Positions 19,389-54,562 of a stretch of DNA of 64,000 nucleotides are shown here, piece after piece. Position 1 is the stretch's first letter, and each line of letters opens with the position of its first letter. The stretch covers positions 545,724,001 to 545,788,000 of the forward strand of contig NC_091286.1 in NCBI RefSeq assembly GCF_032444005.1, written 5' to 3'. The notes beneath the pieces are model-generated. The model had not been told where the DNA came from. It saw nothing but the letters and a program-made list of their open reading frames with translations, and searched no databases. The stretch comes from Ranitomeya imitator. Its lineage: Eukaryota. The translations under genes were made by a program, and so were the position numbers.

Positions 19389-19434
19389 CTGGAATAAAAC
19401 ATTAATATATCACTGAAAGCACAGAATATAAACA

Positions 19435-21165: not shown

Positions 21166-21237
21166 TAGCATGTACAAAATGCAAGGATGAGGCCTCACCT
21201 AGGAATTTACAATTCTAATTCTAAGATATTCAGCGTT

Positions 21238-21905: not shown

Positions 21906-23196
21906 GCATGTCATGTGGAACATTATATGGTGACACCATGATCATGTGGGTTTAGTTTTACCTTGGACTATAGGTAAGCATTCTGAAAGGTTTTATATAG
22001 TTAGTACTAGAGTTGAGCGACCTTGACCTTTTTAGAGTCGAGCCGGGTTTCGCGAAACCCGACTATCTCAAAAGTCGGGTCGAGTGAAATCGGCCGATTA
22101 TGACGTAAAGTCGGGATCGACCGAAACACGAAACCCAATGCAATTCAATGGGGCAGCATAGTCGGCAGTAAGTGGGGGCCAGGAAAACACCTAGAGTGCC
22201 CATTTTAATGTCAAAACCATCCATTCTTCTTAATGAAGCTTGTCAAGCGTAATTTACCTTATAATAATTGGAAGGCATTTGAAATTGGGGGTCATTTGGC
22301 TAAAGTTGTGGTGGGTAAGGCTGGTTCAAGTAATTAGTGGGCCCAGGAAATCTGGACCACGTCACGGCAGTGGAGCAGGGAGAGGTAAGTATTTCAACTT
22401 TGCAAGTGCTGTGAACCTGAGCAAGCAGGGGGGGCCCACTCGTTGGCATTGGCACTGGCACAGGGCCCCTCAAAGTACAGCGGTGTGTTTGCACGGCGGG
22501 GGCGCCTCCCACCGGCAGCAACACTTTTGCGTACTATGAGAGGCCCTGTGCCAGTGACGTCGCCAACTAGTATTCCTCCCCCCACCTGATGAAGGAACCT
22601 GCACTTTCATCTGCACCTTCCTCTTTGTCCCCGTGTAAGGTGGTATGGTATGCGGGAAGAGCAACCTGACTTTCAGCAGGGTCACAATGTTGTTGTGTAG
22701 CGTGCACGGGGAATGTTGCGTTATGGGTCAATGTATCAGCAGACTCATCTATCACTGGCTGGGCAATGGGCAGGATGAGGAGGAAACACAGATATAGGCC
22801 CAAATAATAAAGTGGGCTAAATGCAGTTCAAAATTGGTAACACAGGAATAACCAGGGGGCATTGCAGTGGAGGACAACTGGAATGAGAGGCTGACACAGA
22901 GAGTAGGCCCAAATCAGTAAGTAGTCGAAATGCAGTTCAAAATTGGCAACCGTAGTAAACAGGCGGCACAGCTTTGTTCAGTGGAGGAGAACAGCAAGGA
23001 GTGGCAGACACCGATAGTAGGCCCCAACCCAACTAGTAGGCCAAATGCAGTCTAACATTAACAACTACTTAACGAGCGCCTGAAAACGGAATTTCAGGAC
23101 AGGAAACCAGGAGAACAGCAAGGAGCGGCAGACACTGTTAGTAGGCCCCAAACCAACTAGTACGCCAAATGCAGTTGTTCCATTTAACCACAATTT

Positions 23197-24040
23197 AACG
23201 AGAGCCTGAATATAGAAGCTCAGGAAAGGCAACCTGGAGAACACCTTGGAGTGGAACACACCATCTCTCTCCACCCCATACCCATTTTGTAGGCCTAATG
23301 CTGTGTAGTTTTCTACAACTACTAAACGAGAGTCGGAAGACCGAAGCAATGGCAAGGCAACCTGGGGAACACCTTGGAGTGTAACACACCATCTCTCTCC
23401 ACCCGATACCCATTTTGTAGGCCTAATGCAGTGTAGTTTTCTACAACTACTAAACGAGAGTCGGAAGATCGAAGCAATGGCGAGGAAACCTGGAGAACAC
23501 CTTGGAGTGTAACACACCATCTCTCTCCACCCCATACCCATTTTGTAGGCCTAATGCTGTGTAGTTTTCTACAACTACTAAACGAGAGTCGGAAGACCGA
23601 AGCAATGGCAAGGCAACCTGGGGAACACCTTGGAGTGTAACACACCATCTCTCTCCACCCCATACCCATTTTGTAGGCCTAATGCAGTGTAGTTTTCTAC
23701 AACTACTAAACGAGAGTCGGAAGACCGAAGCAATGGCAAGGCAACCTGGGGAACACCTTGGAGTGTAACACACCATCTCTCTCCACCCGATACCCATTTT
23801 GTAGGCCTAATGCAGTGTAGTTTTCTACAACTACTATACGAGAGTCGGAAGATCGAAGCAATGGCGAGGAAACCTGGAGAACACCTTGGAGTGTAACACA
23901 CCATCTCTCTCCACCCCATACCCATTTTGTAGGCCTAATGCAGCCTACTTTCCGACAACTACTAAACGAGAGCATGAAGATCGAAGCTCAGGAAAGGCAA
24001 CCTGGGGAACACCTTGGAGTGTAACACACCCTCTCTCTAC
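23197..24040. repeat. 128-bp tandem repeat (~6.5 copies), with degenerate ~125-bp units upstream from ~22790
   Basis: ACGAGAG recurs in units starting at 23197, 23325, 23453, 23581, 23709, 23837 and 23965. Confidence 0.95.
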
Positions 24041-24079
24041 ACCACGGAAGGGCTGATTCTTAGGAAGGAAGGCTGTCGG

Positions 24080-24156
24080 AAAGAAGCAGGGCGCGTCCGA
24101 GGGTGATTATATTCTTATTAGGTATATACTCACCCTCGGACGCGCCCTGCTTCTTT
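24080..24156. other. Perfect 27-bp-stem hairpin with 23-nt loop
   Basis: AAAGAAGCAGGGCGCGTCCGAGGGTGA (24080-24106) and its exact reverse complement (24130-24156). Confidence 0.9.
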
Positions 24157-24495
24157 ATTTGTAATGAATGTTTATTTGCAATGTGGTTTTGACTTACTCT
24201 ATTTTTTTGGTAAATAATGATTTTATTATTTTCATTGTTTTGCATCTTCTTGGCAATAATATAAAGAAGACGCGACAGGACAACACTCGGTGGATGCCAT
24301 ATCTGTGTTTTAAATTGAAAAAAACTTTCAGTTAACTACTTGCAGGAGAAAGTTATTGTAGCTGGTGGCCATTTTTAGTACTGTACCAGATTTTTGTTGT
24401 ATGTGTTTGTTTTTAATGTTAAAATGTCTGCATTTGATATCTCTCCAGTATTTTCTTTTTTATAAGCAAAATACTTATTTTTATATTTTCTGATG

Positions 24496-27400
24496 TTGGT
24501 TCAAGGGGTACACGGGCAGCAGTAGACAGGTCAGTGGAGGCCTAGTGGAAGGAGGGACCGCAGACAGGCTTCGAAGCCCTAACATAATAAATTGGGCTGG
24601 CTGTAGGCAATTTAAAATTGGTTCCAGGGGAACCCGGGCAGCAGTAGACAGGTCAGTGGAGGCCTAGTGGAAGGAGGGACCGCAGACAGGCTTCGAAGCC
24701 CTAACATAATAAATTGGGCTGGCTGTAGGCAATTTAAAATTGGTTCCAGGGGAACCCGGGCAGCAGTAGACAGGTCAGTGGAGGCCTAGTGGAAGGAGGG
24801 ACCGCAGACAGGCTCCGAAGCCCTAACATAATAAATTGGGCTGGCTGTAGGCAGTTTAAAATTGGTTCCAGGGGAACCCGGGCAGCAGTAGACAGGTCAG
24901 TGGAGGCCTAGTGGAAGGAGGGACCGCAGACAGGCTTCGAAGCCCTAACATAATAAATTGGGCTGGCTGTAGGCAATTTAAAATTGGTTCCAGGGGAACA
25001 CGGGCAGCAGTGGCCTGGTCAGTGTAGTAGTAGTGGAAAAACGGGCCGCAGACAGGCTTCGAAGGCCTAACATAACAAAAATTGGGATGTAGGCAATTTA
25101 CAATTGGTTCCAGGGGAACACGGGCAGCAGTAGACAGGTCAGTGGAGGCCTAGTGGAAGGAGGGACCGCAGACAGGCTTCGAAGCCCTAACATAATAAAT
25201 TGGCCTGGCTGTAGGCAATTTACAATTGGTTCCAGGGGAACACGGGCGGCAGTAGACAGGTCAGTGGAGGCCTAATGGAAGGAGGGACCGCAGACAGGCT
25301 TCGAAGCCCTAACATAATAAATTGGGCTGGCTGTAGGCAATTTAAAATTGGTTCCAGGGGAACCCGGGCAGCAGTAGACAGGTCAGTGGAGGCCTAGTGG
25401 AAGGAGGGACCGCAGACAGGCTTCGAAGCCCTAACATAATAAATTGGGCTGGCTGTAGGCAATTTAAAATTGGTTCCAGGGGAACCCGGGCAGCAGTAGA
25501 CAGGTCAGTGGAGGCCTAGTGGAAGGAGGGACCGCAGACAGGCTTCGAAGCCCTAACATAATAAATTGGCCTGGCTGTAGGCAATTTACAATTGGTTCCA
25601 GGGGAACACGGGCGGCAGTAGACAGGTCAGTGGAGGCCTAGTGGAAGGAGGGACCGCAGACAGGCTTCGAAGCCCTAACATACTAAATTGGGCTGGCTGT
25701 AGGCAATTTAAAATTGGTTCCAGGGGAACCCGGGCAGCAGTAGACAGGTCAGTGGAGGCCTAGTGGAAGGAGGGACCGCAGACAGGCTTCGAAGCCCTAA
25801 CATAATAAATTGGGCTGGCTGTAGGCAATTTAAAATTGGTTCCAGGGGAACACGGGCAGCAGTGGCCTGGTCAGTGTAGTAGTAGTGGAAAAACGGGCCG
25901 CAGACAGGCTTCGAAGGCCTAACATAACAAAAATTGGGATGTAGGCAATTTACAATTGGTTCCAGGGGAACCCGGGCAGCAGTAGACAGGTCAGTGGAGG
26001 CCTAGTGGAAGGAGGGACCGCAGACAGGCTTCGAAGCCCTAACATAATAAATTGGGCTGGCTGTAGGCAATTTAAAATTGGTTCCAGGGGAACCCGGGCA
26101 GCAGTAGACAGGTCAGTGGAGGCCTAGTGGAAGGAGGGACCGCAGACAGGCTTCGAAGCCCTAACATAATAAATTGGGCTGGCTGTAGGCAATTTAAAAT
26201 TGGTTCCAGGGGAACCCGGGCAGCAGTAGACAGGTCAGTGGAGGCCTAGTGGAAGGAGGGACCGCAGACAGGCTTCGAAGCCCTAACATAATAAATTGGG
26301 CTGGCTGTAGGCAATTTAAAATTGGTTCCAGGGGAACCCGGGCAGCAGTAGACAGGTCAGTGGAGGCCTAGTGGAAGGAGGGACCGAAAACAGGCTTCGA
26401 AGCCCTAACATAATAAATTGGCCTGGCTGTAGGCAATTTACAATTGGTTCCAGGGGAACACGGGCGGCAGTAGACAGGTCAGTGGAGGCCTAGTGGAAGG
26501 AGGGACCGCAGACAGGCTTCGAAGCCCTAACATAATAAATTGGGCTGGCTGTAGGCAATTTAAAATTGGTTCCAGGGGAACCCGGGCAGCAGTAGACAGG
26601 TCAGTGGAGGCCTAGTGGAAGGAGGGACCGCAGACAGGCTTCGAAGCCCTAACATAATAAATTGGGCTGGCTGTAGGCAATTTAAAATTGGTTCCAGGGG
26701 AACCCGGGCAGCAGTAGACAGGTCAGTGGAGGCCTAGTGGAAGGAGGGACCGCAGACAGGCTTCGAAGCCCTAACATAATAAATTGGCCTGGCTGTAGGC
26801 AATTTACAATTGGTTCCAGGGGAACACGGGCGGCAGTAGACAGGTCAGTGGAGGCCTAGTGGAAGGAGGGACCGCAGACAGGCTTCGAAGCCCTAACATA
26901 ATAAATTGGGCTGGCTGTAGGCAATTTAAAATTGGTTCCAGGGGAACCCGGGCAGCAGTAGACAGATCAGTGGAGGCCTAGTGGAAGGAGGGACCGCAGA
27001 CAGGCTTCGAAGCCCTAACATAATAAATTGGGCTGGCTGTAGGCAATTTAAAATTGGTTCCAGGGGAACACGGGCAGCAGTGGCCTGGTCAGTGTAGTAG
27101 TAGTGGAAAAACGGGCCGCAGACAGGCTTCGAAGGCCTAACATAACAAAAATTGGGATGTAGGCAATTTACAATTGGTTCCAGGGGAACACGGGCAGCAG
27201 TAGACAGGTCAGTGGAGGCCTAGTGGAAGGAGGGACTGCAGACAGGCTTCGAAGCCCTAACATAATAAATTGGGCTGGCTGTAGGTAATTTAAAATTGGT
27301 TCCAGGGGAACCCGGGCAGCAGTAGACAGGTCAGTGGAGGCCTAGTGGAAGGAGGGACCGCAGACAGGCTTCAAAGCCCTAACATAATAAATTGGGCTGG

Positions 27401-30400
27401 CTGTAGGCAATTTAAAATTGGTTCCAGGGGAACCCGGGCAGCAGTAGACAGGTCAGTGGAGGCCTAGTAGAAGGAGGGACCGCAGACAGGCTTCGAAGCC
27501 CTAACATAATAAATTGGCCTGGCTGTAGGCAATTTACAATTGGTTCCAGGGGAACACGGGCGGCAGTAGACAGGTCAGTGGAGGCCTAGTGGAAGGAGGG
27601 ACCGCAGACAGGCTTCGAAGCCCTAACATAATAAATTGGGCTGGCTGTAGGCAATTTAAAATTGGTTCCAGGGGAACCCGGGCAGCAGTAGACAGGTCAG
27701 TGGAGGCCTAGTGGAAGGAGGGACCGCAGACAGGCTTCGAAGCCCTAACATAATAAATTGGGCTGGCTGTAGGCAATTTAAAATTGGTTCCAGGGGAACC
27801 CGGGCAGCAGTAGACAGGTCAGTGGAGGCCTAGTGGAAGGAGGGACCGCAGACAGGCTTCGAAGCCCTAACATAATAAATTGGGCTGGCTGTAGGCAATT
27901 TAAAATTGGTTCCAGGGGAACCCGGGCAGCAGTAGACAGGTCAGTGGAGGCCTAGTAGAAGGAGGGACCGCAGACAGGCTTCGAAGCCCTAACATAATAA
28001 ATTGGCCTGGCTGTAGGCAATTTACAATTGGTTCCAGGGGAACACGGGCGGCAGTAGACAGGTCAGTGGAGGCCTAGTGGAAGGAGGGACCGCAGACAGG
28101 CTTCAAAGCCCTAACATAATAAATTGGGCTGGCTGTAGGCATTTTAAAATTGGTTCCAGGGGAACCCGGGCAGCAGTAGACAGGTCAGTGGAGGCCTAGT
28201 GGAAGGAGGGACCGCAGACAGGCTTCGAAGCCCTAACATAATAAATTGGCCTGGCTGTAGGCAATTTACAATTGGTTCCAGGGGAACACGGGCGGCAGTA
28301 GACAGGTCAGTGGAGGCCTAGTGGAAGGAGGGACCTCAGACAGGCTTCGAAGCCCTAACATAATAAATTGGGCTGGCTGTAGGCAATTTAAAATTGGTTC
28401 CAGGGGAACCCGGGCAGCAGTAGACAGGTCAGTGGAGGCCTAGTGGAAGGAGGGACCGCAGACAGGCTTCGAAGCCCTAACATAATAAATTGGGCTAGCT
28501 GTAGGCAATTTAAAATTGGTTCCAGGGGAACACGGGCAGCAGTGGCCTGGTCAGTGTAGTAGTAGTGGAAAAACGGGCCGCAGACAGGCTTCGAAGGCCT
28601 AACATAACAAAAATTGGGATGTAGGCAATTTACAATTGGTTCCAGGGGAACACGGGCAGCAGTAGACAGGTCAGTGGAGGCCTAGTGGAAGGAGGGACCG
28701 CAGACAGGCTTCGAAGCCCTAACATAATAAATTGGGCTGGCTGTAGGTAATTTAAAATTGGTTCCAGGGGAACCCGGGCAGCAGTAGACAGGTCAGTGGA
28801 GGCCTAGTGGAAGGAGGGACCGCAGACAGGCTTCGAAGCCCTAACATAATAAATTGGGCTGGCTGTAGGTAATTTAAAATTGGTTCCAGGGGAACCCGGG
28901 CAGCAGTAGACAGGTCAGTGGAGGCCTAGTGGAAGGAGGGACCGCAGACAGGCTTCAAAGCCCTAACATAATAAATTGGGCTGGCTGTAGGCAATTTAAA
29001 ATTGGTTCCAGGGGAACCCGGGCAGCAGTAGACAGGTCAGTGGAGGCCTAGTAGAAGGAGGGACCGCAGACAGGCTTCGAAGCCCTAACATAATAAATTG
29101 GCCTGGCTGTAGGCAATTTACAATTGGTTCCAGGGGAACACGGGCGGCAGTAGACAGGTCAGTGGAGGCCTAGTGGAAGGAGGGACCGCAGACAGGCTTC
29201 GAAGCCCTAACATAATAAATTGGGCTGGCTGTAGGCAATTTAAAATTGGTTCCAGGGGAACCCGGGCAGCAGTAGACAGGTCAGTGGAGGCCTAGTGGAA
29301 GGAGGGACCGCAGACAGGCTTCGAAGCCCTAACATAATAAATTGGGCTGGCTGTAGGCAATTTAAAATTGGTTCCAGGGGAACCCGGGCAGCAGTAGACA
29401 GGTCAGTGGAGGCCTAGTGGAAGGAGGGACCGCAGACAGGCTTCGAAGCCCTAACATAATAAATTGGGCTGGCTGTAGGCAATTTAAAATTGGTTCCAGG
29501 GGAACCCGGGCAGCAGTAGACAGGTCAGTGGAGGCCTAGTAGAAGGAGGGACCGCAGACAGGCTTCGAAGCCCTAACATAATAAATTGGCCTGGCTGTAG
29601 GCAATTTACAATTGGTTCCAGGGGAACACGGGCGGCAGTAGACAGGTCAGTGGAGGCCTAGTGGAAGGAGGGACCGCAGACAGGCTTCAAAGCCCTAACA
29701 TAATAAATTGGGCTGGCTGTAGGCATTTTAAAATTGGTTCCAGGGGAACCCGGGCAGCAGTAGACAGGTCAGTGGAGGCCTAGTGGAAGGAGGGACCGCA
29801 GACAGGCTTCGAAGCCCTAACATAATAAATTGGCCTGGCTGTAGGCAATTTACAATTGGTTCCAGGGGAACACGGGCGGCAGTAGACAGGTCAGTGGAGG
29901 CCTAGTGGAAGGAGGGACCGCAGACAGGCTTCGAAGCCCTAACATAATAAATTGGGCTGGCTGTAGGCAATTTAAAATTGGTTCCAGGGGAACCCGGGCA
30001 GCAGTAGACAGGTCAGTGGAGGCCTAGTGGAAGGAGGGACCGCAGACAGGCTTCGAAGCCCTAACATAATAAATTGGGCTAGCTGTAGGCAATTTAAAAT
30101 TGGTTCCAGGGGAACACGGGCAGCAGTGGCCTGGTCAGTGTAGTAGTAGTGGAAAAACGGGCCGCAGACAGGCTTCGAAGGCCTAACATAACAAAAATTG
30201 GGATGTAGGCAATTTACAATTGGTTCCAGGGGAACACGGGCAGCAGTAGACAGGTCAGTGGAGGCCTAGTGGAAGGAGGGACCGCAGACAGGCTTCGAAG
30301 CCCTAACATAATAAATTGGGCTGGCTGTAGGTAATTTAAAATTGGTTCCAGGGGAACCCGGGCAGCAGTAGACAGGTCAGTGGAGGCCTAGTGGAAGGAG

Positions 30401-33400
30401 GGACCGCAGACAGGCTTCAAAGCCCTAACATAATAAATTGGGCTGGCTGTAGGCAATTTAAAATTGGTTCCAGGGGAACCCGGGCAGCAGTAGACAGGTC
30501 AGTGGAGGCCTAGTAGAAGGAGGGACCGCAGACAGGCTTCGAAGCCCTAACATAATAAATTGGCCTGGCTGTAGGCAATTTACAATTGGTTCCAGGGGAA
30601 CACGGGCGGCAGTAGACAGGTCAGTGGAGGCCTAGTGGAAGGAGGGACCGCAGACAGGCTTCGAAGCCCTAACATAATAAATTGGGCTGGCTGTAGGCAA
30701 TTTAAAATTGGTTCCAGGGGAACCCGGGCAGCAGTAGACAGGTCAGTGGAGGCCTAGTGGAAGGAGGGACCGCAGACAGGCTTCGAAGCCCTAACATAAT
30801 AAATTGGGCTGGCTGTAGGCAATTTAAAATTGGTTCCAGGGGAACCCGGGCAGCAGTAGACAGGTCAGTGGAGGCCTAGTGGAAGGAGGGACCGCAGACA
30901 GGCTTCGAAGCCCTAACATAATAAATTGGGCTGGCTGTAGGCAATTTAAAATTGGTTCCAGGGGAACCCGGGCAGCAGTAGACAGGTCAGTGGAGGCCTA
31001 GTAGAAGGAGGGACCGCAGACAGGCTTCGAAGCCCTAACATAATAAATTGGCCTGGCTGTAGGCAATTTACAATTGGTTCCAGGGGAACACGGGCGGCAG
31101 TAGACAGGTCAGTGGAGGCCTAGTGGAAGGAGGGACCGCAGACAGGCTTCGAAGCCCTAACATAATAAATTGGGCTGGCTGTAGGCAATTTAAAATTGGT
31201 TCCAGGGGAACCCGGGCAGCAGTAGACAGGTCAGTGGAGGCCTAGTGGAAGGAGGGACCGCAGACAGGCTTCGAAGCCCTAACATAATAAATTGGGCTGG
31301 CTGTAGGCAATTTAAAATTGGTTCCAGGGGAACCCGGGCAGCAGTAGACAGGTCAGTGGAGGCCTAGTGGAAGGAGGGACCGCAGACAGGCTTCGAAGCC
31401 CTAACATAATAAATTGGCCTGGCTGTAGGCAATTTACAATTGGTTCCAGGGGAACACGGGCGGCAGTAGACAGGTCAGTGGAGGCCTAGTGGAAGGAGGG
31501 ACCGCAGACAGGCTTCGAAGCCCTAACATAATAAATTGGGCTGGCTGTAGGCAATTTAAAATTGGTTCCAGGGGAACCCGGGCAGCAGTAGACAGGTCAG
31601 TGGAGGCCTAGTGGAAGGAGGGACCGCAGACAGGCTTCGAAGCCCTAACATAATAAATTGGGCTGGCTGTAGGCAATTTAAAATTGGTTCCAGGGGAACA
31701 CGGGCAGCAGTGGCCTGGTCAGTGTAGTAGTAGTGGAAAAACGGGCCGCAGACAGGCTTCGAAGGCCTAACATAACAAAAATTGGGATGTAGGCAATTTA
31801 CAATTGGTTCCAGGGGAACACGGGCAGCAGTAGACAGGTCAGTGGAGGCCTAGTGGAAGGAGGGACCGCAGACAGGCTTCGAAGCCCTAACATAATAAAT
31901 TGGGCTGACTGTAGGTAATTTAAAATTGGTTCCAGGGGAACCCGGGCAGCAGTAGACAGGTCAGTGGAGGCCTAGTGGAAGGAGGGACCGCAGACAGGCT
32001 TCAAAGCCCTAACATAATAAATTGGGCTGGCTGTAGGCAATTTAAAATTGGTTCCAGGGGAACCCGGGCAGCAGTAGACAGGTCAGTGGAGGCCTAGTAG
32101 AAGGAGGGACCGCAGACAGGCTTCGAAGCCCTAACATAATAAATTGGCCTGGCTGTAGGCAATTTACAATTGGTTCCAGGGGAACACGGGCGGCAGTAGA
32201 CAGGTCAGTGGAGGCCTAGTGGAAGGAGGGACCGCAGACAGGCTTCGAAGCCCTAACATAATAAATTGGGCTGGCTGTAGGCAATTTAAAATTGGTTCCA
32301 GGGGAACCCGGGCAGCAGTAGACAGGTCAGTGGAGGCCTAGTGGAAGGAGGGACCGCAGACAGGCTTCGAAGCCCTAACATAATAAATTGGGCTGGCTGT
32401 AGGCAATTTAAAATTGGTTCCAGGGGAACCCGGGCAGCAGTAGACAGGTCAGTGGAGGCCTAGTGGAAGGAGGGACCGCAGACAGGCTTCGAAGCCCTAA
32501 CATAATAAATTGGGCTGGCTGTAGGCAATTTAAAATTGGTTCCAGGGGAACCCCGGCAGCAGTAGACAGGTCAGTGGAGGCCTAGTGGAAGGAGGGACCG
32601 AAAACAGGCTTCGAAGCCCTAACATAATAAATTGGCCTGGCTGTAGGCAATTTACAATTGGTTCCAGGGGAACACGGGCGGCAGTAGACAGGTCAGTGGA
32701 GGCCTAGTGGAAGGAGGGACCGCAGACAGGCTTCGAAGCCCTAACATAATAAATTGGGCTGGCTGTAGGCAATTTAAAATTGGTTCCAGGGGAACCCGGG
32801 CAGCAGTAGACAGGTCAGTGGAGGCCTAGTGGAAGGAGGGACCGCAGACAGGCTTCGAAGCCCTAACATAATAAATTGGGCTGGCTGTAGGCAATTTAAA
32901 ATTGGTTCCAGGGGAACCCGGGCAGCAGTAGACAGGTCAGTGGAGGCCTAGTGGAAGGAGGGACCGCAGACAGGCTTCGAAGCCCTAACATAATAAATTG
33001 GCCTGGCTGTAGGCAATTTACAATTTGTTCCAGGGAAACACGGGCGGCAGTAGACAGGTCAGTGGAGGCCTAGTGGAAGGAGGGACCGCAGACAGGCTTC
33101 GAAGCCCTAACATAATAAATTGGGCTGGCTGTAGGCAATTTAAAATTGGTTCCAGGGGAACCCGGGCAGCAGTAGACAGGTCAGTGGAGGCCTAGTGGAA
33201 GGAGGGACCGCAGACAGGCTTCGAAGCCCTAACATAATAAATTGGGCTAGCTGTAGGCAATTTAAAATTGGTTCCAGGGGAACACGGGCAGCAGTGGCCT
33301 GGTCAGTGTAGTAGTAGTGGAAAAACGGGCCGCAGACAGGCTTCGAAGGCCTAACATAACAAAAATTGGGATGTAGGCAATTTACAATTGGTTCCAGGGG

Positions 33401-36400: not shown

Positions 36401-39400
36401 CATAATAAATTGGGCTGGCTGTAGGCAATTTAAAATTGGTTCCAGGGGAACCCGGGCAGCAGTAGACAGGTCAGTGGAGGCCTAGTGGAAGGAGGGACCG
36501 CAGACAGGCTTCGAAGCCCTAACATAATAAATTGGGCTAGCTGTAGGCAATTTAAAATTGGTTCCAGGGGAACACGGGCAGCAGTGGCCTGGTCAGTGTA
36601 GTAGTAGTGGAAAAACGGGCCGCAGACAGGCTTCGAAGGCCTAACATAACAAAAATTGGGATGTAGGCAATTTACAATTGGTTCCAGGGGAACACGGGCA
36701 GCAGTAGACAGGTCAGTGGAGGCCTAGTGGAAGGAGGGACCGCAGACAGGCTTCGAAGCCCTAACATAATAAATTGGGCTGGCTGTAGGTAATTTAAAAT
36801 TGGTTCCAGGGGAACCCGGGCAGCAGTAGACAGGTCAGTGGAGGCCTAGTGGAAGGAGGGACCGCAGACAGGCTTCAAAGCCCTAACATAATAAATTGGG
36901 CTGGCTGTAGGCAATTTAAAATTGGTTCCAGGGGAACCCGGGCAGCAGTAGACAGGTCAGTGGAGGCCTAGTAGAAGGAGGGACCGCAGACAGGCTTCGA
37001 AGCCCTAACATAATAAATTGGCCTGGCTGTAGGCAATTTACAATTGGTTCCAGGGGAACACGGGCGGCAGTAGACAGGTCAGTGGAGGCCTAGTGGAAGG
37101 AGGGACCGCAGACAGGCTTCGAAGCCCTAACATAATAAATTGGGCTGGCTGTAGGCAATTTAAAATTGGTTCCAGGGGAACCCGGGCAGCAGTAGACAGG
37201 TCAGTGGAGGCCTAGTGGAAGGAGGGACCGCAGACAGGCTTCGAAGCCCTAACATAATAAATTGGGCTGGCTGTAGGCAATTTAAAATTGGTTCCAGGGG
37301 AACCCGGGCAGCAGTAGACAGGTCAGTGGAGGCCTAGTGGAAGGAGGGACCGCAGACAGGCTTCGAAGCCCTAACATAATAAATTGGGCTGGCTGTAGGC
37401 AATTTAAAATTGGTTCCAGGGGAACCCGGGCAGCAGTAGACAGGTCAGTGGAGGCCTAGTAGAAGGAGGGACCGCAGACAGGCTTCGAAGCCCTAACATA
37501 ATAAATTGGCCTGGCTGTAGGCAATTTACAATTGGTTCCAGGGGAACACGGGCGGCAGTAGACAGGTCAGTGGAGGCCTAGTGGAAGGAGGGACCGCAGA
37601 CAGGCTTCGAAGCCCTAACATAATAAATTGGGCTGGCTGTAGGCAATTTAAAATTGGTTCCAGGGGAACCCGGGCAGCAGTAGACAGGTCAGTGGAGGCC
37701 TAGTGGAAGGAGGGACCGCAGACAGGCTTCGAAGCCCTAACATAATAAATTGGGCTGGCTGTAGGCAATTTAAAATTGGTTCCAGGGGAACCCGGGCAGC
37801 AGTAGACAGGTCAGTGGAGGCCTAGTGGAAGGAGGGACCGCAGACAGGCTTCGAAGCCCTAACATAATAAATTGGCCTGGCTGTAGGCAATTTACAATTG
37901 GTTCCAGGGGAACACGGGCGGCAGTAGACAGGTCAGTGGAGGCCTAGTGGAAGGAGGGACCGCAGACAGGCTTCGAAGCCCTAACATAATAAATTGGGCT
38001 GGCTGTAGGCAATTTAAAATTGGTTCCAGGGGAACCCGGGCAGCAGTAGACAGGTCAGTGGAGGCCTAGTGGAAGGAGGGACCGCAGACAGGCTTCGAAG
38101 CCCTAACATAATAAATTGGGCTGGCTGTAGGCAATTTAAAATTGGTTCCAGGGGAACACGGGCAGCAGTGGCCTGGTCAGTGTAGTAGTAGTGGAAAAAC
38201 GGGCCGCAGACAGGCTTCGAAGGCCTAACATAACAAAAATTGGGATGTAGGCAATTTACAATTGGTTCCAGGGGAACACGGGCAGCAGTAGACAGGTCAG
38301 TGGAGGCCTAGTGGAAGGAGGGACCGCAGACAGGCTTCGAAGCCCTAACATAATAAATTGGGCTGACTGTAGGTAATTTAAAATTGGTTCCAGGGGAACC
38401 CGGGCAGCAGTAGACAGGTCAGTGGAGGCCTAGTGGAAGGAGGGACCGCAGACAGGCTTCAAAGCCCTAACATAATAAATTGGGCTGGCTGTAGGCAATT
38501 TAAAATTGGTTCCAGGGGAACCCGGGCAGCAGTAGACAGGTCAGTGGAGGCCTAGTAGAAGGAGGGACCGCAGACAGGCTTCGAAGCCCTAACATAATAA
38601 ATTGGCCTGGCTGTAGGCAATTTACAATTGGTTCCAGGGGAACACGGGCGGCAGTAGACAGGTCAGTGGAGGCCTAGTGGAAGGAGGGACCGCAGACAGG
38701 CTTCGAAGCCCTAACATAATAAATTGGGCTGGCTGTAGGCAATTTAAAATTGGTTCCAGGGGAACCCGGGCAGCAGTAGACAGGTCAGTGGAGGCCTAGT
38801 GGAAGGAGGGACCGCAGACAGGCTTCGAAGCCCTAACATAATAAATTGGGCTGGCTGTAGGCAATTTAAAATTGGTTCCAGGGGAACCCGGGCAGCAGTA
38901 GACAGGTCAGTGGAGGCCTAGTGGAAGGAGGGACCGCAGACAGGCTTCGAAGCCCTAACATAATAAATTGGGCTGGCTGTAGGCAATTTAAAATTGGTTC
39001 CAGGGGAACCCGGGCAGCAGTAGACAGGTCAGTGGAGGCCTAGTAGAAGGAGGGACCGCAGACAGGCTTCGAAGCCCTAACATAATAAATTGGCCTGGCT
39101 GTAGGCAATTTACAATTGGTTCCAGGGGAACACGGGCGGCAGTAGACAGGTCAGTGGAGGCCTAGTGGAAGGAGGGACCGCAGACAGGCTTCGAAGCCCT
39201 AACATAATAAATTGGGCTGGCTGTAGGCAATTTAAAATTGGTTCCAGGGGAACCAGGGCAGCAGTAGACAGGTCAGTGGAGGCCTAGTGGAAGGAGGGAC
39301 CGCAGACAGGCTTCGAAGCCCTAACATAATAAATTGGGCTGGCTGTAGGCAATTTAAAATTGGTTCCAGGGGAACCCGGGCAGCAGTAGACAGGTCAGTG

Positions 39401-40789
39401 GAGGCCTAGTGGAAGGAGGGACCGCAGACAGGCTTCGAAGCCCTAACATAATAAATTGGCCTGGCTGAAGGCAATTTACAATTGGTTCCAGGGGAACACG
39501 GGCGGCAGTAGACAGGTCAGTGGAGGCCTAGTGGAAGGAGGGACCGCAGACAGGCTTCGAAGCCCTAACATAATAAATTGGGCTGGCTGTAGGCAATTTA
39601 AAATTGGTTCCAGGGGAACCCGGGCAGCAGTAGACAGGTCAGTGGAGGCCTAGTGGAAGGAGGGACCGCAGACAGGCTTCGAAGCCCTAACATAATAAAT
39701 TGGGCTGGCTGTAGGCAATTTAAAATTGGTTCCAGGGGAACACGGGCAGCAGTGGCCTGGTCAGTGTAGTAGTAGTGGAAAAACGGGCCGCAGACAGGCT
39801 TCGAAGGCCTAACATAACAAAAATTGGGATGTAGGCAATTTACAGTTGGTTCCAGGGGAACACGGGCAGCAGTAGACAGGTCAGTGGAGGCCTAGTGGAA
39901 GGAGGGACCGCAGACAGGCTTCGAAGCCCTAACATAATAAATTGGCCTGGCTGTAGGCAATTTACAATTGGTTCCAGGGGAACACGGGCGGCAGTAGACA
40001 GGTCAGTGGAGGCCTAGTGGAAGGAGGGACCGCAGACAGGCTTCGAAGCCCTAACATAATAAATTGGGCTGGCTGTAGGCAATTTAAAATTGGTTCCAGG
40101 GGAACCCGGGCAGCAGTAGACAGGTCAGTGGAGGCCTAGTGGAAGGAGGGTCCGCAAACAGGCTTCGAAGCCCTAACATAATAAATTGGGCTGGCTGTAG
40201 GCAATTTAAAATTGGTTCCAGGGGAACACGGGCGGCAGTAGACAGGTCAGTGGAGGCCTAGTGGAAGGAAGGACCGCAGACAGGCTTCAAAGCCCTAACA
40301 TAATAAATTGGGCTGGCTGTAGGCATTTTAAAATTGGTTCCAGGGGAACCCGGGCAGCAGTAGACAGGTCAGTGGAGGCCTAGTGGAAGGAGGGACCGCA
40401 GACAGGCTTCGAAGCCCTAACATAATAAATTGGGCTGGCTGTAGGCAATTTAAAATTGGCTCCAGGGGAACACGGGCAGCAGTGGCCTGGTCAGTGTAGT
40501 AGTAGTGGAAAAACGGGCCGCAGACAGGCTTCGAAGGCCTAACATAACAAAAATTGGGATGTAGGCAATTTACAATTGGTTCCAGGGGAACCTGGGCAGC
40601 AGTAGACAGGTCAGTGGAGGCCTAGTGGAAGGAGGGACCGCAGACAGGCTTCGAAGCCCTAACATAATAAATTGGGCTGGCTGTAGGCAATTTAAAATTG
40701 GTTCCAGGGGAACCCGGGCAGCAGTAGACAGGTCAGTGGAGGCCTAGTGGAAGGAGTGACCGCAGACAGGCTTCGAAGGCCTAACATAA
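24496..40789. repeat. 122-bp satellite array (~133 monomers) with higher-order repeat structure marked by a 120-bp variant monomer
   Basis: Period 122 (TCGAAG-equivalent positions at 24571, 24693, 24815); 12 variant monomers with spacings of n x 122 + 120. Confidence 0.97.
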
Positions 40790-41251
40790 GAAAAATGTCA
40801 ATACAATGGTATTGACAGTGCCAGGCATTGAAGGATGTCAGCGCATAGACTAAACATTGGTGGAGCTGTGAGAGAAAATTTTGCAAGTGGTAGAGCACTG
40901 TTTGACCTGGGGGGGGGGACTGTCTTGTGGCCGGCGGTACAGGCCCAGGGCCCCTCATATTACAACGGTGTGTCTGACGTTGGGTGCGCACCACCACCGC
41001 CAGACACTTTATTGTACTATGAGGGACCTAGTGGCAGTGCCGTCGACCAAAAGCGGGCACACCCACCTCTTCAGACAAACAGTACTCTCACGGGTGCTGG
41101 CGCCAAGTGGCGATACCACGGCCCCGTGTGGGGACTTTGGCCATCTAGGGAGGTGTTAACATGTCGGATGCTGGACAATCAGGTGCTGCAAATTACAAGA
41201 TTGGAAAAGTCGTTCAGAATAGTCCACAGGCAAGACCTTTACATAGGAAAG

Positions 41252-44200
41252 CTAGGTGTCAGCCGGGCAAGGTGGGGCAAAAGATTTCGAAATCCAGTTG
41301 TGGTTCATTTTAATGAAGGTTAGATCATCTACATTTTGGGTAGCCAGACGAGTCCTTTTTTCTGTTAGTATTGAACCTGCAGCACTGAATACTCTTTCTG
41401 ATAGGACACTAGCTGCCGGGCAAGCAAGCTCCTGCAATGCATATTCTGCCAATTCTGGCCAGGTGTCTAATTTTGATGCCCAGTAATCAAATGGGAATGA
41501 CGGTTGAGGGAGAACGTCGATAAGGGATGAAAAATAGTTAGTAACCATACTGGACAAATGTTGTCTCCTGTCACTTTGAATTGATGCTGCAGTACCTGTC
41601 CTGTCTGCGGTCATAGCAAAATCACTCCACAACCTGGTCAGAAAACCACTCTGGCTAACGACACTTCTGATTTCTGCCCCTCTAACACCTCTGGTCTGCT
41701 GGCCCCTGCAGCTCGTGTTAGAACGATCACGGGCGCTGTGTGCAGGGAATGCCAGAAGCAAACGGTCAACAAGAGTTGATTGTTTGGTTGCTAATATTAG
41801 TTCCAAGTTCTCATGTGGCATTATATTTTGCAATTTGCCTTTATAGCGAGGATCAAGGAGGCAGGCCAACCAGTAATCGTCATCGTTCATCATTTTTGTT
41901 ATGCGTGTGTCCCTTTTGAGGATACGTAAGGCATAATCCGCCATGTGGGCCAAAGTTCCAGTTCTCAAATCTGTGGTTGTGCTTGGTTGAGGGGCAGTTT
42001 CAGGCAAATCCACGTCACTTGTGTCCCTCCAAAAACCAGAACCCGGCCTTGCCGCGCCAACAATTTCCACTGGCCCCGGAAAAGCTTCCTCATTAAAAAT
42101 ATAATCATCCCCATCATCCTCCTCGTCCTCCTCCTCCTCTTCGCCCGCTACCTCGTCCTGTACACTGCCCTGGCCAGACAATGGCTGACTGTCATCAAGG
42201 CTTTCCTCTTCCTCAGCTGCAGACGCCTGATCCTTTATGTGCGTCAAACTTTGCATCAGCAGACGCATTAGGGGGATGCTCATGCTTATTATGGCGTTGT
42301 CTGCACTAACCAGCCGTGTGCATTCCTCAAAACACTGAAGGACTTGACACATGTCTTGAATCTTCGACCACTGCACACCTGACAACTCCATGTCTGCCAT
42401 CCTACTGCCTGCCCGTGTATGTGTATCCTCCCACAAAAACATAACAGCCCGCCTCTGTTCACACAGTCTCTGAAGCATGTGCAGTGTTGAGTTCCACCTT
42501 GTTGCAACGTCTATGATTAGGCGATGCTGGGGAAGGTTCAAAGAACGCTGATAGGTCTGCATACGGCTGGAGTGTACGGGCGAACGGCGGATATGTGAGC
42601 AAAGTCCACGCACTTTGAGGAGCAGGTCGGATAACCCCGGATAACTTTTCAGGAAGCACTGCACCACCAGGTTTAAGGTGTGAGCCAGGCAAGGAATGTG
42701 TTTCAGTTGGGAAATGGAGATGGCAGCCATGAAATTCCTTCCGTTATCACTCACTACCTTGCCTGCCTCAAGATCTACAGTGCCCAGCCACGACTGCGTT
42801 TCTTTCTGCAAGAACTCGGACAGAACTTCAGCGGTGTGTCTGTTGTCGCCCAAACACTTCATAGCCAATACAGCCTGCTGACGTTTGCCAGTAGCTGCCC
42901 CATAATGGGAGACCTGGTGTGCAACAGTGGCAGCTGCGGATGGAGTGGTTGTGCGACTGCGGTCTGTGGACGAGGTCTCGCTTCTGCAGGAGGAGGAGGA
43001 GGAGGGGGTGCGAATGGCTACAGCCAACTGTTTCCTAGACCGTGGGCTAGGCAGAACTGTCCCAAACTTGCTGTCCCCTGTGGACCCTGCATCCACCACA
43101 TTTACCCAGTGTGCCGTGATGGACACGTAACGTCCCTGGCCATGCCTACTGGTCCATGCATCTGTTGTCAGGTGCACCTTTGTGCTCACAGATTGCCTGA
43201 GTGCATGGACGATGCGCTCTTTAACATGCTGGTGGAGGGCTGGGATGGCTTTTCTGGAAAAAAAGTGTCGACTGGGTAGCTCGTAGCGTGGTACAGCGTA
43301 GTCCATCAGGGCTTTGAAAGCTTCGCTTTCAACTAACCGGTAGGGCATCATCTCTAACGAGATTAGTCTAGCTATGTGGGCGTTCAAACCCTGTGTACGC
43401 GGATGCGAGGCTAAGTACTTCCTTTTTCTAACCATAGTCTCATGTAGGGTGAGCTGGACTGGAGAGCTGGAGATCGTGGAACTAGCGGGGGTGCCGGTGG
43501 ACATGGCAGACTGAGAGACGGTGGGAGATGGTATTGTTGCCGCCGGTGCCCTAGATGCAGTGTTTCCTACTACGAAACTGGTGATTCCCTGACCCTGACT
43601 TCTTTGGCCTGGCAAAGAAACCTGCACAGATACTGCAGGTGGTGCAGAAAATGGTGGCCCTACACTGCCGGAAGGGATGTTGCGTTGATGACTAGCTTCA
43701 TTGGCCGAGGGTGCTACAACCTTAAGGGACGTTTGGTAGTTAGTCCAAGCTTGCAAATGCATGGTGGTTAAATGTCTATGCATGCAACTTGTATTGAGAC
43801 TTTTCAGATTCTGCCCTCTGCTTAAGGTAGTTGAACATTTTTTGACAGATGACTTTGCGCTGATCAATTGGATGTTGTTTAAAAAAATGCCAGACTGCAC
43901 TCTTTCTAGCATCGGATACCTTTTCAGGCATTGCAGACTGAGCTTTAACCGGATGGCCACGCTGTCCTCCAACAGGTTTTGACTTTGCCACGCGTTTTGG
44001 GCAAGATACGGGCCCGGCAGATGGAACCTGTTGCGATGTTGATGCCTGCTGCGGCCCCTCCTCCTCCGCTTCAGAACTGCTGCCGCCTGCACCCTGTTCC
44101 CCCAATGGCTGCCAATCGGGGTCAAGAACTGGGTCATCTATTACCTCTTCTTGTAGCTCGTGTGCAACTTCGTCTGTGTCACCTTGTCGGTCGGTGGTAT

Positions 44201-44816
44201 AGCGTTCGTGATGGGGCAACATAGTCTCATCAGGGTCTGATTCTTGATCAGCACCCTGCGAGGGCAATGTTGTGGTCTGAGTCAAAGGACCAGCATAGTA
44301 GTCTGGCTGTGGCTGTGCATCAGTGCACTCCATGTCAGATTCAACTTGTAATGGGCATGGACTGTTAACTGCTTCACTTTCTAAGCCAGGGACGGTATGT
44401 GTAAAGAGCTCCATGGAGTAACCCATTGTGTCGCCTGCTGCATTCTTCTCTGTTGTTGTTTTTGCTGAAGAGGACAAGGAAGCGACTTGTCCCTGACCGT
44501 GAACATCCACTAACGACGCGCTGCTTTTACTTTTACCAGTTTCACGAGAGGAGGCAAAAGAGCTAGAGGCTGAGTCAGCAAGATAAGCCAAAACTTGCTC
44601 TTGCTGCTCCGGCTTTAAAAGCGGTTTTCCTACTCCCAGAAAAGGGAGCGTTCGAGGCCTTGTGTAGCCAGACGACGAACCTGGCTCCACAGCTCCAGAC
44701 TTAGGTGCAATATTTTTTTTCCCACGACCACCTGATGCTCCACCACTACCACTACCCTCATTACCAGCTGACAATGAACGCCCCCGGCCACGACCTCTTC
44801 CACCAGACTTCCTCAT
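41252..44816 (-). pseudogene. BED-finger hAT transposase, ~1187 aa if the single +1 frameshift at 43838-43843 is corrected
   Basis: BED finger split across two ORFs (AVWHFF...VICQK | CSTTLS...MHRHLTTMH); catalytic motifs LTTDAWTS, VSDNGRN, CLAH, TRWNS, LLDPRYK, SERVFS; hAT dimerisation domain. Confidence 0.9.
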
Positions 44817-45019
44817 TGTTTTAAAAACGTTACCAAACTAACGGTATTTGTTGCAGTCACACAACTTACACGGTGAGCTATAACTTCAGTATGATTTAGC
44901 TACCCCTTTACAGGTGGGTGAGACCACAACGAAAATCAGGCACAATGTTACACACTCTGTTGTTGGTGGCAACAAATGAGAGAGATGCCACACACGCAGG
45001 ACTGTCACTGAAGCGCAAA

Positions 45020-46330
45020 TGTAAATATTAATCTCCCACTGATTTGTGTTTTTTTTTTTTAAAAAGGAGACTTTAGAAAAAAAAAAAAAAATGATTTTTT
45101 AAGGAAGAATTTATAAACCAAATAAAATGAAATGATTTTTTCAGGGAGAATTTAGAAAACAAATAAAACATAAAATAGCCTTTCTAGGGCCCAGTGAGTG
45201 AGAGAGGACGCACACAGGAGTCAGGAGTGGCACACAAGCCCAGAGGCCAATATTTATCTCCCACTGATTGATTTAGTGATTTTTTCAGGTAGATTTTGGA
45301 ACCCAAATCAAGCAAAAAAATTAATAGGCTTTCTATGGCCCACAATTGGAGAGAGAGAGATGGCACACCCAGGAGTCAAGACTGGCACACAAGCAGAAAG
45401 GGCAATATTAATCTCCCACTGATTTGTTTTTTTTTTTTTTTTTCAGGGAGACTTTAGAAAAAAAAATACAAAAAAAATGATTTTTTTCAGGAATAATTTA
45501 GAAACCAAATAAAATAAAATGATTTTTTCAGGGAGAATTTAGAAAACAAATAAAACAAAAAATAGGCTTTCTAGGGCCCACTGAGTGAGAGAGGATGCAC
45601 ACAGGAGTCAGGAGTGGCACACAAGCCCAGAGGCCAATATTTATCTCCCACTGATTGATTTAGTGATTTTTTCAGGTAGATTTTGGAACCCAAATCAAGC
45701 AAAAAAATTAATAGGCTTTCTATGGCCCACAATTGGAGAGAGAGAGATGGCACACCCAGGAGTCAAGACTGGCACACAAGCAGAAAGGGCAATATTAATC
45801 TCCCACTGATTTGATTATTTTTTTTTTTTTCAGGGAGACTTTAGAAAAAAAAAATACAAAAAAAATGTTTTTTTTCAGGAATAATTTAGAAACCAAATAA
45901 AATAAAATGATTTTTTCAGGGAGAATTTAGAAAACAAATAAAACAAAAAATAGGCTTTCTAGGGCCCACTGAGTGAGAGAGGACGCACACAGGAGTCAGG
46001 AGTGGCACACAAGCCCAGAGGCCAATATTTATCTCCCACTGATTGATTTATTGATTTTTTCAGGTAGAATTTAGAACCCAAATCAACCAAAAAAATAAAT
46101 AGGCTTTCTATGGCCCACTATCTGAGAGAGAGAGATGGCACGCTTAGGACTGGCACACAAGCCCAAAGGCCAATATTAATCTCCCACTGATTGATTTATT
46201 GATTTTTTCAGGAACCCAAATCAAGCAAAAAAATAAATAGGCTTTCTATGGCCCACTGAGTGAGAGATGACACAGACAGGGATGGCACTCTAGCAGAAAT
46301 GCCAATCTTAATCTCCCACAAAAAAAAAAA
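45020..46330. repeat. 387-bp tandem repeat (~3.4 copies), A/T-tract rich
   Basis: Identical small ORFs at 45198 and 45585; a third unit starts near 45972. Confidence 0.9.
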
Positions 46331-46748
46331 AAAAGGAACTGTCCTTCAATTACTATCTCCCTGCAGTAATCTCAGCCAGGTATGGCAGGCAGCAATAAGG
46401 AGTGGACTGATGCACAAATTAAAAAAGTGTGGACAAACAAACAAGATAGCTGTGCAGAAAGGAAGGAACAAGAGGATTTGTGCTTTGAAAAAAGCAGTTG
46501 GTTTGCACAGCGGCGTACACACAGCAATGCAGCTATCAGGGAGCCTTCTAGGGCAGCCCAATGAGCTACAGTGCTGAGGGGAAAAAAAAAAAATGTAGCT
46601 TCCACTGTCCCTGCACACCGAAGGTGGTGTTGGGCAGTGGAAATCGCTACAGCACAAGCGGTTTGGTGGTTAATGGACCCTGCCTAACGCTATCCCTGCT
46701 TCTGACGAAGCGGCAGCAACCTCTCCCTAGGCTCAGATCAGCAGCAGT

Positions 46749-46896
46749 AACATGGCGGTCGGCGGGAACTCCCCTTTATAGCCCCTGTGACGCCGCAGAC
46801 AGCAAGCCAATCACTGCAATGCCCTTCTCTAAGATGGTGGGGACCAGGACCTATGTCATCACGCTGCCCACACTCTGCGTTTACCTTCATTGGCTG
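46749..46896 (-). promoter_or_regulatory. Candidate hAT transposase promoter
   Basis: Minus-strand TATAAA at 46780-46775, CCAAT boxes near 46807 and 46891, YY1-like AACATGGCGG at 46749-46758; points from the right end toward the ORF. Confidence 0.5.
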
Positions 46897-48085
46897 AGAA
46901 ATGGCGCTTTTCGCGTCATTGAAACGCGACTTTGGCGCGAAAGTCGCGTACCGCATGGCCGACCCCGCACAGGGGTCGGATCGGGTTTCATGAAACCCGA
47001 CTTTGTCAAAAGTCGGCTACTTTTGAAAATGTTCGACCCGTTTCGCTCAACCCTAGTTAGTACAATACAATTGCTTGCTGCCAAATGATTGAGTTATCTT
47101 GTCAGCTCTGCTGCATCTGAATGCATATAGATTATTTCACTCCATTTCCTGATCTATGAGCAATATTGTGTGCACTTAGCTGAATATTTCATCATACAAA
47201 AGTCGCATATTATTTACTACTCAAAGACTTCACTGTGTTTGTACTAAATATCCTCTCCTTTGACACTTAGGGACTAAGCCAATTTTGCCAGTTTTGAGGA
47301 GCAGAATATTTTATTAATTTTTCCTTTTACGAATCATAATTTTCATATTTCTTGCTTCACATTTTCTCCTAAAAGTACACAGACAGCTGTCTGTCCTAAC
47401 ACCAGTAAATATTGCCAGATGGCCATGGGGACTTTCAGTAGACCTTGGGCTTTTTGACTATGATAGGTATAAGCTTCAATCACGTTAAAAAGTTTTGTGT
47501 TAAAACGGAGGTTCCACTCACTTTATCCATCTTTATGCAGTGATAAGGGTTGTGGCATTTGCAGGGTTAACCTGTTGAGGTTCTTCTGATTTGCTCCATT
47601 ACGGTAGGATTGTACATGTGTATTACTTTTAAATGCCAGGCTGCGTTTTCAGGTGCTTAAAGGGGTATTCTTTTGTTATGAAATTGGTATAGTTAGATGA
47701 ACAGCGTCACAATAAGACAGTTTGCAATTGATTTGCTTTTATATCTGCTTTCATTCTCTTGCTTTAAGAGCTTTTATCTTATGTAGCATACAGCTTATTG
47801 AAAAGGAGCTCTGCCACCAAAACCTGGCCAAGGATGCACAGAAGTTACATTCCAGGAGAGGAGTTAACTCCTGAGATACCAGCCACCTCTCTCCAGGCGA
47901 CTAATTTCTATACAGCAGTTAGCTCCTCACCTTCCCCTTGACTGTCAGCTACTAACCTGTTATCAATCTTGAGTAATCACAAACTCCCATCCTGGCCCTC
48001 ACCATCACCAGTTTTCACTTATGCAATTTTTGCTTATTCAAAGGCACTGTTATCTCTAGATGCAAATTCAGAGCAAGCACTGTTA

Positions 48086-48808: not shown

Positions 48809-48951
48809 CCTCCAGCTGTGTTCACAAAGGGGTAACTCCATCCAGTCTCTGTCTTGCAGTATGGGCCCTGAGACAATCCCAGTGAGGAGATAATCAAGGA
48901 ATATCCAGAAAACAACACACCCAGAAGAGCGAAAATTGCAGACCCCAGTCT
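48809..48951 (-). CDS. tm4sf18: TM4SF18 coding exon 3
   Basis: RLGSAIFALLGVLFSGYSLIISSLGLSQGPYCKTETGWSYPFVNTAG; TTTCAG acceptor in phase 0, GTACGT donor in phase 2; 143 nt. Confidence 0.92.
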
Positions 48952-50310: not shown

Positions 50311-50462
50311 AAAACACAGTATATAGTTAATAGTGTTCTGACACCGTGCGTCGGCTGCACTGAGAGTCATGATGCCAGGAGGAAATTAACTTCGTTCCTC
50401 ACTGCAGCCTAGGGGGCGGCGCCGTACTGTTTCAGTCACAGCAGCTGTAACTGCGCCTCTTA

Positions 50463-54523: not shown

Positions 54524-54562
54524 CGTGTGTGGTCCTGACTGTATCCCGAAGAGACTGTCACC

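Follow-up and report, generated by a model that had tools for sequence, protein, structure and literature searches.

The stretch of DNA analyzed here (the window) comprises 64,000 nucleotides of Ranitomeya imitator (NCBI RefSeq assembly GCF_032444005.1, contig NC_091286.1, positions 545,724,001 to 545,788,000 of the forward strand), and all positions are counted from its first letter. It contains an element of 25,048 bp (22008–47055), which occupies 25 kb of a 29-kb host intron. An earlier interpretation made from the letters and their open reading frames (ORFs), referred to below as the sequence-only reading, had described this element as a hAT transposon carrying satellite arrays together with its own transposase. 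Its hAT identity is confirmed by a target site duplication (TSD), terminal inverted repeats (TIRs), enrichment of the hexamer AAGTCG, the hAT dimerization domain PF05699, half of a BED finger, and an alignment to the Hermes transposase. It is probable that the element is a complete young copy of an abundant Ac-type hAT family, built to the standard layout of that family, in which one internal array (array B) has grown in the present copy.

The ends of the element consist of the following features.

22000–22007, no strand: left TSD copy GTTAGTAC, identical to 47056–47063 and adjoining the left end
22008–22020, forward strand: left TIR TAGAGTTGAGCGA, of the class beginning TAGAG or TAGGG (the pair is TAGAG / TAGGG)
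22021–22257, no strand: left subterminal region, with 10 CpG per 100 bp, AAGTCG/AGTCGG motifs and a palindrome at 22043–22062
46806–47042, no strand: right subterminal region, with 12 CpG per 100 bp, AAGTCG motifs and palindromes at 46924–46949 and 46981–47000
47043–47055, reverse strand: right TIR, reverse complement TAGGGTTGAGCGA
47056–47063, no strand: right TSD copy GTTAGTAC, adjoining the right end, a perfect 8-bp match

As the sequence-only reading had stated, the TSD is perfect over 8 bp and the two TIRs agree over 13 bp with one mismatch; their likeness ends past base 13. The TSD fits nTnnnnAn, the motif targeted by Ac-type hAT elements, and the TIRs fit 5'-YARNG, the general pattern of hAT ends, in which TIRs are short (about 10–25 bp). 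When one mismatch is allowed, the pattern TAGRGTTGAGCGA has two matches in the 64 kb, located at the two element ends, where 0.07 are expected. The subterminal regions are set apart by their CpG density (10–12 per 100 bp vs. 2.7 for the whole window) and by AAGTCG, 6 of whose 15 copies in the window fall within the outermost 250 bp at either end (against an expectation of 0.06 per 250 bp). The palindromes CCGGGTTTCGCGAAACCCGA (22043–22062) and TCGGGTTTCATGAAACCCGA (46981–47000) lie about 35–55 bp inside their respective ends. Subterminal palindromes had been proposed as a mirrored pair, and they are indeed found at both ends; mirrored orientation was ruled out, however, as the 35-bp module to which they belong (22044–22078 vs. 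46982–47016, 89% alike) is a direct repeat about a palindromic core. No further copies or fragments of the element were found in the rest of the 64-kb window, and a search of 20–49 kb with Rfam gathering thresholds returned no RNA family.

The transposase is encoded on the reverse strand by two overlapping ORFs, which jointly span about 3.56 kb.

43776–44816, reverse strand: upstream frame, ORF of 346 amino acids (aa), with the N-terminal region and the first half of the BED finger
41252–44137, reverse strand: downstream frame, 961-aa ORF, with the second half of the BED finger, the catalytic core and the hAT dimerization domain

PF05699 is found in the downstream ORF with an E value of 1.5e-11 and a score of 44.4 bits (cut-off 21.4), and the same ORF aligns to the Hermes transposase through the blocks VSDNGRN, CLAHTLN, TRWNST, and SERVFS; the block of the first Asp, TTDAWT, was spotted in the translation by eye only. 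The second half of the zf-BED finger scores 18.3 bits, below the cut-off of 20.6, the finger being interrupted by a frame change. The Ranitomeya variabilis homolog P0013 matches the upstream ORF as far as VICQK and the downstream ORF from KCSTTL, and because it reads through the same point, the frame must change once, at the A-run 43838–43843 in the middle of the finger. The transposase is therefore near-intact, as had been read from the letters, with catalytic motifs, the dimerization domain and one frameshift in the BED finger. Homopolymers are the commonest site of long-read errors, and since the frameshift lies in one, the break may be a read error; it is presumably genuine rather than an error of this type. 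The split finger bears on the integrity of the present copy and not on its membership of the hAT family.

The closest database proteins are ZBED-like models of Ranitomeya (up to 97% identical in R. imitator and 81–90% in R. variabilis), with remoter relatives across frogs that include Dendrobates tinctorius at 74%. In a second protein search using the C-terminal 282 aa, only NCBI frog models were close. The hAT superfamily is the source of the vertebrate ZBED genes. Many R. imitator models (P0001, P0003, P0005, P0038, P0053, and others) join fragments of this hAT transposase to host domains, namely Ras, fibronectin III, P450, and reverse transcriptase; these fused models are either annotation artefacts or exonized transposon pieces.

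The host gene is represented in the window by three exons on the reverse strand.

63055–63204, reverse strand: exon, L6_membrane profile positions 15–61
48820–48957, reverse strand: exon, L6_membrane profile positions 85–131, E value 2.8e-12
19196–19393, reverse strand: last coding exon, L6_membrane profile positions 135–190, E value 1.2e-17

These exons match the Pfam L6_membrane profile in order on one strand, which makes the host a gene of the TM4SF/L6 family. The sequence-only reading had placed the element in intron 3 of tm4sf18; an intron of a TM4SF/L6-family gene is borne out, tm4sf18 being a putative name for the paralog. As the exons at 48820–48957 and 19196–19393 are consecutive, the element lies in the last coding intron, and its transposase, on the reverse strand, gives it the same orientation as the host gene. 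Identical TSDs, with consecutive exons of one gene on either side, make a misjoin of two copies very unlikely, and the interpretation of the element as one single hAT insertion is supported.

Internal arrays and modules

Three tandem arrays (A, B, and C) account for 18,899 of the 25,048 bp (75.5%), in agreement with the earlier description of three arrays with units of 128, 122, and 387 bp making up about three quarters of the element. Together with the modules and the spacer that accompany them, they are arranged as follows.

22428–22581, forward strand: module X1, an imperfect hairpin with 51-nt arms, direct repeat of module X2
22786–24043, forward strand: array A, 1.26 kb, about 10 units of 109–128 bp
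24044–24495, forward strand: spacer, a hairpin with a 27-bp stem followed by an AT-rich stretch
24496–40793, forward strand: array B, 16.3 kb, 134 monomers head-to-tail
28749–32553, forward strand: exact internal duplicate in array B, 3,805 bp, equal to 35207–39011 at a lag of 6,458
40936–41050, forward strand: module X2, direct repeat of module X1, with array B on its left and the 3' end of the transposase gene on its right
44977–46319, forward strand: array C, upstream of the transposase start, with A+T-rich 387-bp units composed of sub-repeats of 155 bp and 41 bp

Array A is graded, passing from degenerate units of 109–126 bp on the TIR side to 128-bp units that are 94–100% alike at its right. 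The spacer hairpin (24080–24156) has a perfect 27-bp stem and a DNA folding z score of −13.5, and is followed by sequence of 71% A+T up to 24495. Arrays A and B are bracketed by a hairpin-forming module of about 115–150 bp (22428–22581 and 40900–41075); its two copies, compared over 22451–22566 and 40936–41050, are 77% alike in direct orientation.

Array B is composed of 122 monomers of 122 bp and 12 monomers of a 120-bp variant (82% alike), which together comprise 30 distinct sequences. In the middle of the array, the variant returns at intervals of 13 monomers (1,584 bp), and at the edges its spacing is irregular (7, 10, 12, 15, and 6 monomers). The modal higher-order repeat is accordingly one of 13 monomers and 1,584 bp, and sequences 1,584 bp apart within the array mostly have an identity of 0.96–1.0. 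On a larger scale, a duplication of ~5.4 kb relates about 28640–34010 to 35100–40470, with the 3,805-bp identical stretch as its core.

The motif AATAAA occurs 119 times on the forward strand of array B and is absent from its reverse strand, which is the sense strand for both the host gene and the transposase. Insertion in the opposite orientation would give a host pre-mRNA with more than 100 poly(A) signals.

Abundance of the family in public sequencing runs

Contigs from four public sequencing runs (runs X1, X5, X10, and X25) were aligned to 19101–25100, that is, to the left 3 kb of the element and its flank. Summed contig depth is not equal to copy number, and was used for orders of magnitude and ratios only; the runs of organisms B, C, and E are without coverage of the single-copy flank. 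In run X1 (organism A), single-copy depth is 9–13, with 13 for the host exon (13.4 over 19101–19300), and 21301–21900 has a depth of 9–25. The junction of flank and TIR is crossed by contig record 8 of this run, which extends 22 nt into the TIR at a depth of 8.9 and with no differences. At the hAT boundary the depth climbs from about 10 to about 1 million, evidence of many dispersed copies with different flanks and thus of mobility. Summed depths in run X1 are 1.0–2.0 million for the hAT left end, 0.5–2.5 million for array A, 0.86–0.95 million for the spacer, and 2.0, 0.26, and 3.15 million per 200-bp bin for the first five monomers of array B. By this rough measure, the family numbers on the order of 10^5 copies. 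Over its first 700 bp, the present copy has about 5 sites at which it departs from the majority of the family.

Sampled words of the left flank and left end were recovered at 67–78% in the runs of organism A and at 34–43% in five other organisms. For words sampled from one higher-order unit of array B, recovery is 94–96% in the best runs of organism A and 20–56% in organisms B, C, E, F, and G, also where a data set comprises only 5–6 million letters. Contigs of organisms C and E match 22113–23135 and 24127–24523 with 0–4 differences, and the spacer is matched by contigs of organisms B, C, and E with 0–2 differences. At least three further frog organisms thus carry near-identical pieces of the family.

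The junction between array A and the spacer is bridged by one contig (run X5, record 30). Within arrays A and B, contig joints of run X1 skip 125, 126, 261, 493, and 513 bp (1–2 contigs each), which indicates that array copy number differs between copies of the family, the joints skipping one to four units. The content of array B per family copy was roughly estimated as the ratio of its mass over 24496–25100 to the depth per base at the left end, with each contig placed once. On this scale there are about 6 monomer equivalents per left end in run X1, about 14 in run X25, about 24 in run X5, and about 35 in run X10. Such values fit a modest array in most copies, and the depth ratio, rough as it is, argues against the 122-bp repeat being a major satellite in its own right. 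With 134 monomers, the present copy exceeds the rough family average of 6–35, and array A, at 1.26 kb, is near the family average by the same depth measure.

The bin containing the 120-bp variant (24901–25100) has the highest depth among the array B bins in all four runs, and loose contig ends in organisms C and E resemble this variant. It may be the commoner or older type of B monomer in the family.

Probable growth of array B, and surrounding repeats

The consensus monomer of array B aligns to the oldest units of array A (22796–23010) with a local score of 27, compared with 9.2 ± 1.4 in shuffled sequences, and BLAST gives 65% identity over 115 nt. This homology implies that arrays A and B descend from one unit, and it argues against a foreign origin of array B, whether as a satellite or as a second element nested inside an ordinary hAT copy. 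Such an origin would be in keeping with the sharp edges of array B, with the lack of degenerate monomers in its flanks (no B-monomer remnants above shuffles were found in the spacer, the right flank at 40794–41251, both element ends, or array C), and with the AT-rich hairpin spacer that parts it from array A. It is nonetheless exceedingly improbable. The sequence-only reading had named boundaries or a TSD of its own as the mark of an independent satellite, and neither a TSD nor a TIR of array B itself was found at 24496 or 40793. The spacer and the start of array B are, moreover, multi-copy and conserved between organisms, and the mass of B is on a par with that of the hAT ends and does not exceed it by orders of magnitude. 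Since array A, the spacer, and the B monomer reach depths in organism A of the same order as the left end, the arrays are best regarded as part of the body plan of the family; that they belong to the transposon family and not to an independent satellite is supported. The idea of a satellite-carrier hAT family is supported, the arrays being best read as the family's own sequence. Transport of the whole 16 kb as cargo found no supporting evidence.

The presence of 30 distinct sequences among 134 monomers, the 13-monomer repeat, and the 3,805-bp duplicate point to recent, stepwise, local amplification. Either the last amplification step was very recent, or identity has been kept by conversion. 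It is most likely that at least this last step, the ~5.4-kb duplication, occurred at the present locus; most of the growth of array B would have come after insertion, and the array would be neutral within the intron. We consider it possible but doubtful that all 25 kb moved as one unit from a donor, with the 16-kb array and its higher-order repeat already in place, in which case ready-made arrays would be spread by the element. The perfect TSD and the CpG-rich, undecayed ends are compatible with such a transfer, as is a left end only about 5 sites in 700 away from the family majority, and the medaka hAT element Tol1 reportedly carries about 22 kb in experiments. The exact duplicate, however, implies a very recent last step, the mean B mass per left end is far under 134 monomers, and no donor with this order of repeats was seen. 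The sequence-only reading had offered travel with the element or expansion in place, and both apply, with a short seed travelling and expansion taking place on site: an array of short to moderate length is typical of the family, and the nested duplications represent local growth.

The length of array B, or the join of the element's two ends, might alternatively be an assembly artefact, arising from looping or from two hAT copies joined via their shared satellite. Exact repeats of 3.8 kb and near-exact repeats of ~5.4 kb in a 16-kb array are hard for reads of 15–20 kb; the number of family copies indicated by summed depth likewise favors this explanation, as does the position of the sole frameshift in a homopolymer run, a typical site of long-read error. 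Even so, it is decidedly unlikely. The identical TSDs and the consecutive exons, in the right order and on the right strand, speak strongly against a misjoin, a contig of single-copy depth confirms the left junction, and both the irregular repeat lengths (7, 10, 12, 13, and 15 monomers) and the private variants at the right edge look natural. Some observations do weigh against the preferred reading of a young family copy with an array grown in place. The layout taken as the family standard is drawn from summed depths and a few short contigs from the left 3 kb; the contig leading from the spacer into array B (run X10, record 16) enters it by 28 nt, below the 31-nt rule; and exact repeats of 3.8 kb within an array are also expected from assembly error.

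It is also conceivable, though quite unlikely, that the arrays are functional for the transposon or the host, as putative transposase-binding sites or a sink for transposase, as a source of small RNAs, or as a seed of intronic heterochromatin. The apparently fixed positions of the arrays in the element, kept across species, would accord with a function, as would the single AGTCGG (the subterminal hexamer) in each young unit of array A and the 119 AATAAA motifs confined to the strand of array B opposite to that of the host gene and transposase. The B monomer is, however, without the subterminal motif, a single hexamer in the amplified 128-bp unit amounts to one event with a chance of about 6%, and copy number varies freely, as that of neutral repeats would. 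The idea that array A serves as a block of binding sites for the transposase was rejected, its AGTCGG being one hexamer amplified with the unit. The sink, small-RNA source, and heterochromatin seed put forward in the sequence-only reading found no support.

On the preferred reading, one young Ac-type hAT copy would have been inserted by cut and paste into the last intron of the TM4SF/L6 gene. Its family, which would belong to dendrobatid (Ranitomeya-like) frogs and be very abundant, would have a layout that begins with a TIR, a subterminal region of binding motifs, module X, array A, the hairpin and AT-rich spacer, and array B, and continues with a second module X, the transposase gene on the reverse strand, array C, a subterminal region, and the other TIR. 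The ancestral unit of arrays A and B would have measured about 110–120 bp. Array B may have reached 134 monomers by nested unequal exchange or replication slippage, growing from the monomer to the 13-monomer higher-order repeat, and from this to the ~5.4-kb segmental duplication.

Several other repeats surround the element.

1522–1551 and 20386–20419: 8-bp microsatellite ACTATGTT, about 4 units, at two places 18.9 kb apart
2327–2689, 3433–4077 and 49965–50311: arrays of a 31-bp unit that begins ACAGTATGATGTCCCCACAGCTCC
11965–13711: 27-bp array CATCATTTGCAGTCCCCATCACCCCCA, about 65 units, 78% alike, with many indels
19301–21100: very high-copy repeat between the last host exon and the hAT element
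21239–21906: tandem array of about 30 units of 22 bp that are 82% alike, adjoining the insertion site
54149–61812: composite telomere-like TTAGGG/GGATCC arrays, with N runs at 56355–56493 and 56499–56685

The repeat at 19301–21100 has a summed depth of 0.2–1.3 million in run X1, occurs also in organisms B and E, and differs from its family majority at many sites. The 22-bp array has single-copy depth (9–25 in run X1), and is therefore local and not a dispersed family. The 31-bp arrays probably belong to another dispersed element as its internal array, and the paired ACTATGTT microsatellites suggest two copies of one repeat family. P0064 gives a weak match at 59904–60071.

Comparison with known systems

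The element shares with the Ac-type hAT transposons (Ac, hobo, Hermes, and Tol1/Tol2) an 8-bp TSD, short TIRs of the form TAG(A/G)G, and repeated subterminal hexamers, as well as a transposase that combines a BED finger, a DDE core, and a hAT dimerization domain and can be aligned to Hermes. It differs from them in its size, which is 25 kb instead of the usual few kb, and in the arrays that make up 75% of its length and flank the transposase gene on both sides. In the head-to-tail order of its ~120-bp monomers, its 13-monomer unit at 96–100% identity, and its segmental duplications, array B resembles arrays of the alpha-satellite type, and its length and homogeneity are likewise those of classical satellite DNA. 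Unlike alpha-satellite-type arrays, it is only 16 kb long and is intronic and located within a transposon, and any centromeric or heterochromatic role of it would be hypothetical.

Elements of the hAT superfamily are abundant in poison-frog genomes, making up 3.9% of D. tinctorius and 255 Mb in O. pumilio according to the genome papers, whose searched passages describe no array-bearing hAT architecture. The closest parallel in print is FEDoR of Rana temporaria, an element of ~3.5 kb with TSDs, inverted repeats, and four internal repeat blocks (PMC12054243). FEDoR has 22-bp monomers and no ORF, is similar to hAT over about 150 bp, and carries an AT-rich insert of constant length (72% A+T) between two blocks of one repeat family (PMC12054243). 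Likened by description, both are frog elements with internal arrays at seemingly fixed positions and an AT-rich insert (72% A+T in FEDoR, 71% here); the present element differs in being of autonomous type, with units of 120–390 bp and a 16-kb array, where FEDoR is 3.5 kb long, ORF-less, and built of 22-bp units. By this analogy, the element looks like an autonomous-type counterpart of the FEDoR design.

At this locus, an autonomous-type hAT element is seen whose own repeats form an intragenic 16-kb array with higher-order structure. For the single locus the implication is modest, as one neutral-looking insertion fills most of an intron. If the preferred reading of a young family copy with a locally grown array is true, it would provide a concrete, datable route by which satellite-like DNA is seeded throughout euchromatin, a means by which DNA transposons enlarge the giant genomes of dendrobatids, and a naturally occurring test of how large a transposing hAT element can be. 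It is tempting to speculate further that one autonomous poison-frog hAT lineage routinely transposes units of 12–25 kb and is the main vehicle of 110–390-bp satellite arrays with higher-order structure, amounting to several per cent of a 6–7-Gb genome, with FEDoR-like relatives as its decayed derivatives. We regard this broader scenario as unlikely; under it, the arrays might be retained for the benefit of the element, through spacing, transposase binding, or evasion of silencing.

Expanding arrays borne by transposons are known from Helitrons and Helentrons (oyster, Drosophila), from miDNA4 and Xstir of Xenopus, which are MITEs (miniature inverted-repeat transposable elements), and from Tetris of Drosophila virilis (PMC12628747, PMC4079207, PMC7492417); hAT goes unmentioned in a review from 2025 on how transposons and satellites are connected. 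As in the present element, the internal arrays of Helentrons, MITEs, and Tetris vary in copy number, expand, and are spread by a mobile element. Those systems belong to the non-autonomous MITEs, to the rolling-circle elements, or to the foldback elements, in contrast to an element with its own hAT transposase and a higher-order repeat. Array-carrying Helentrons, MITEs, Tetris, and FEDoR were thus already known, and what is new here is an autonomous hAT at such a scale.

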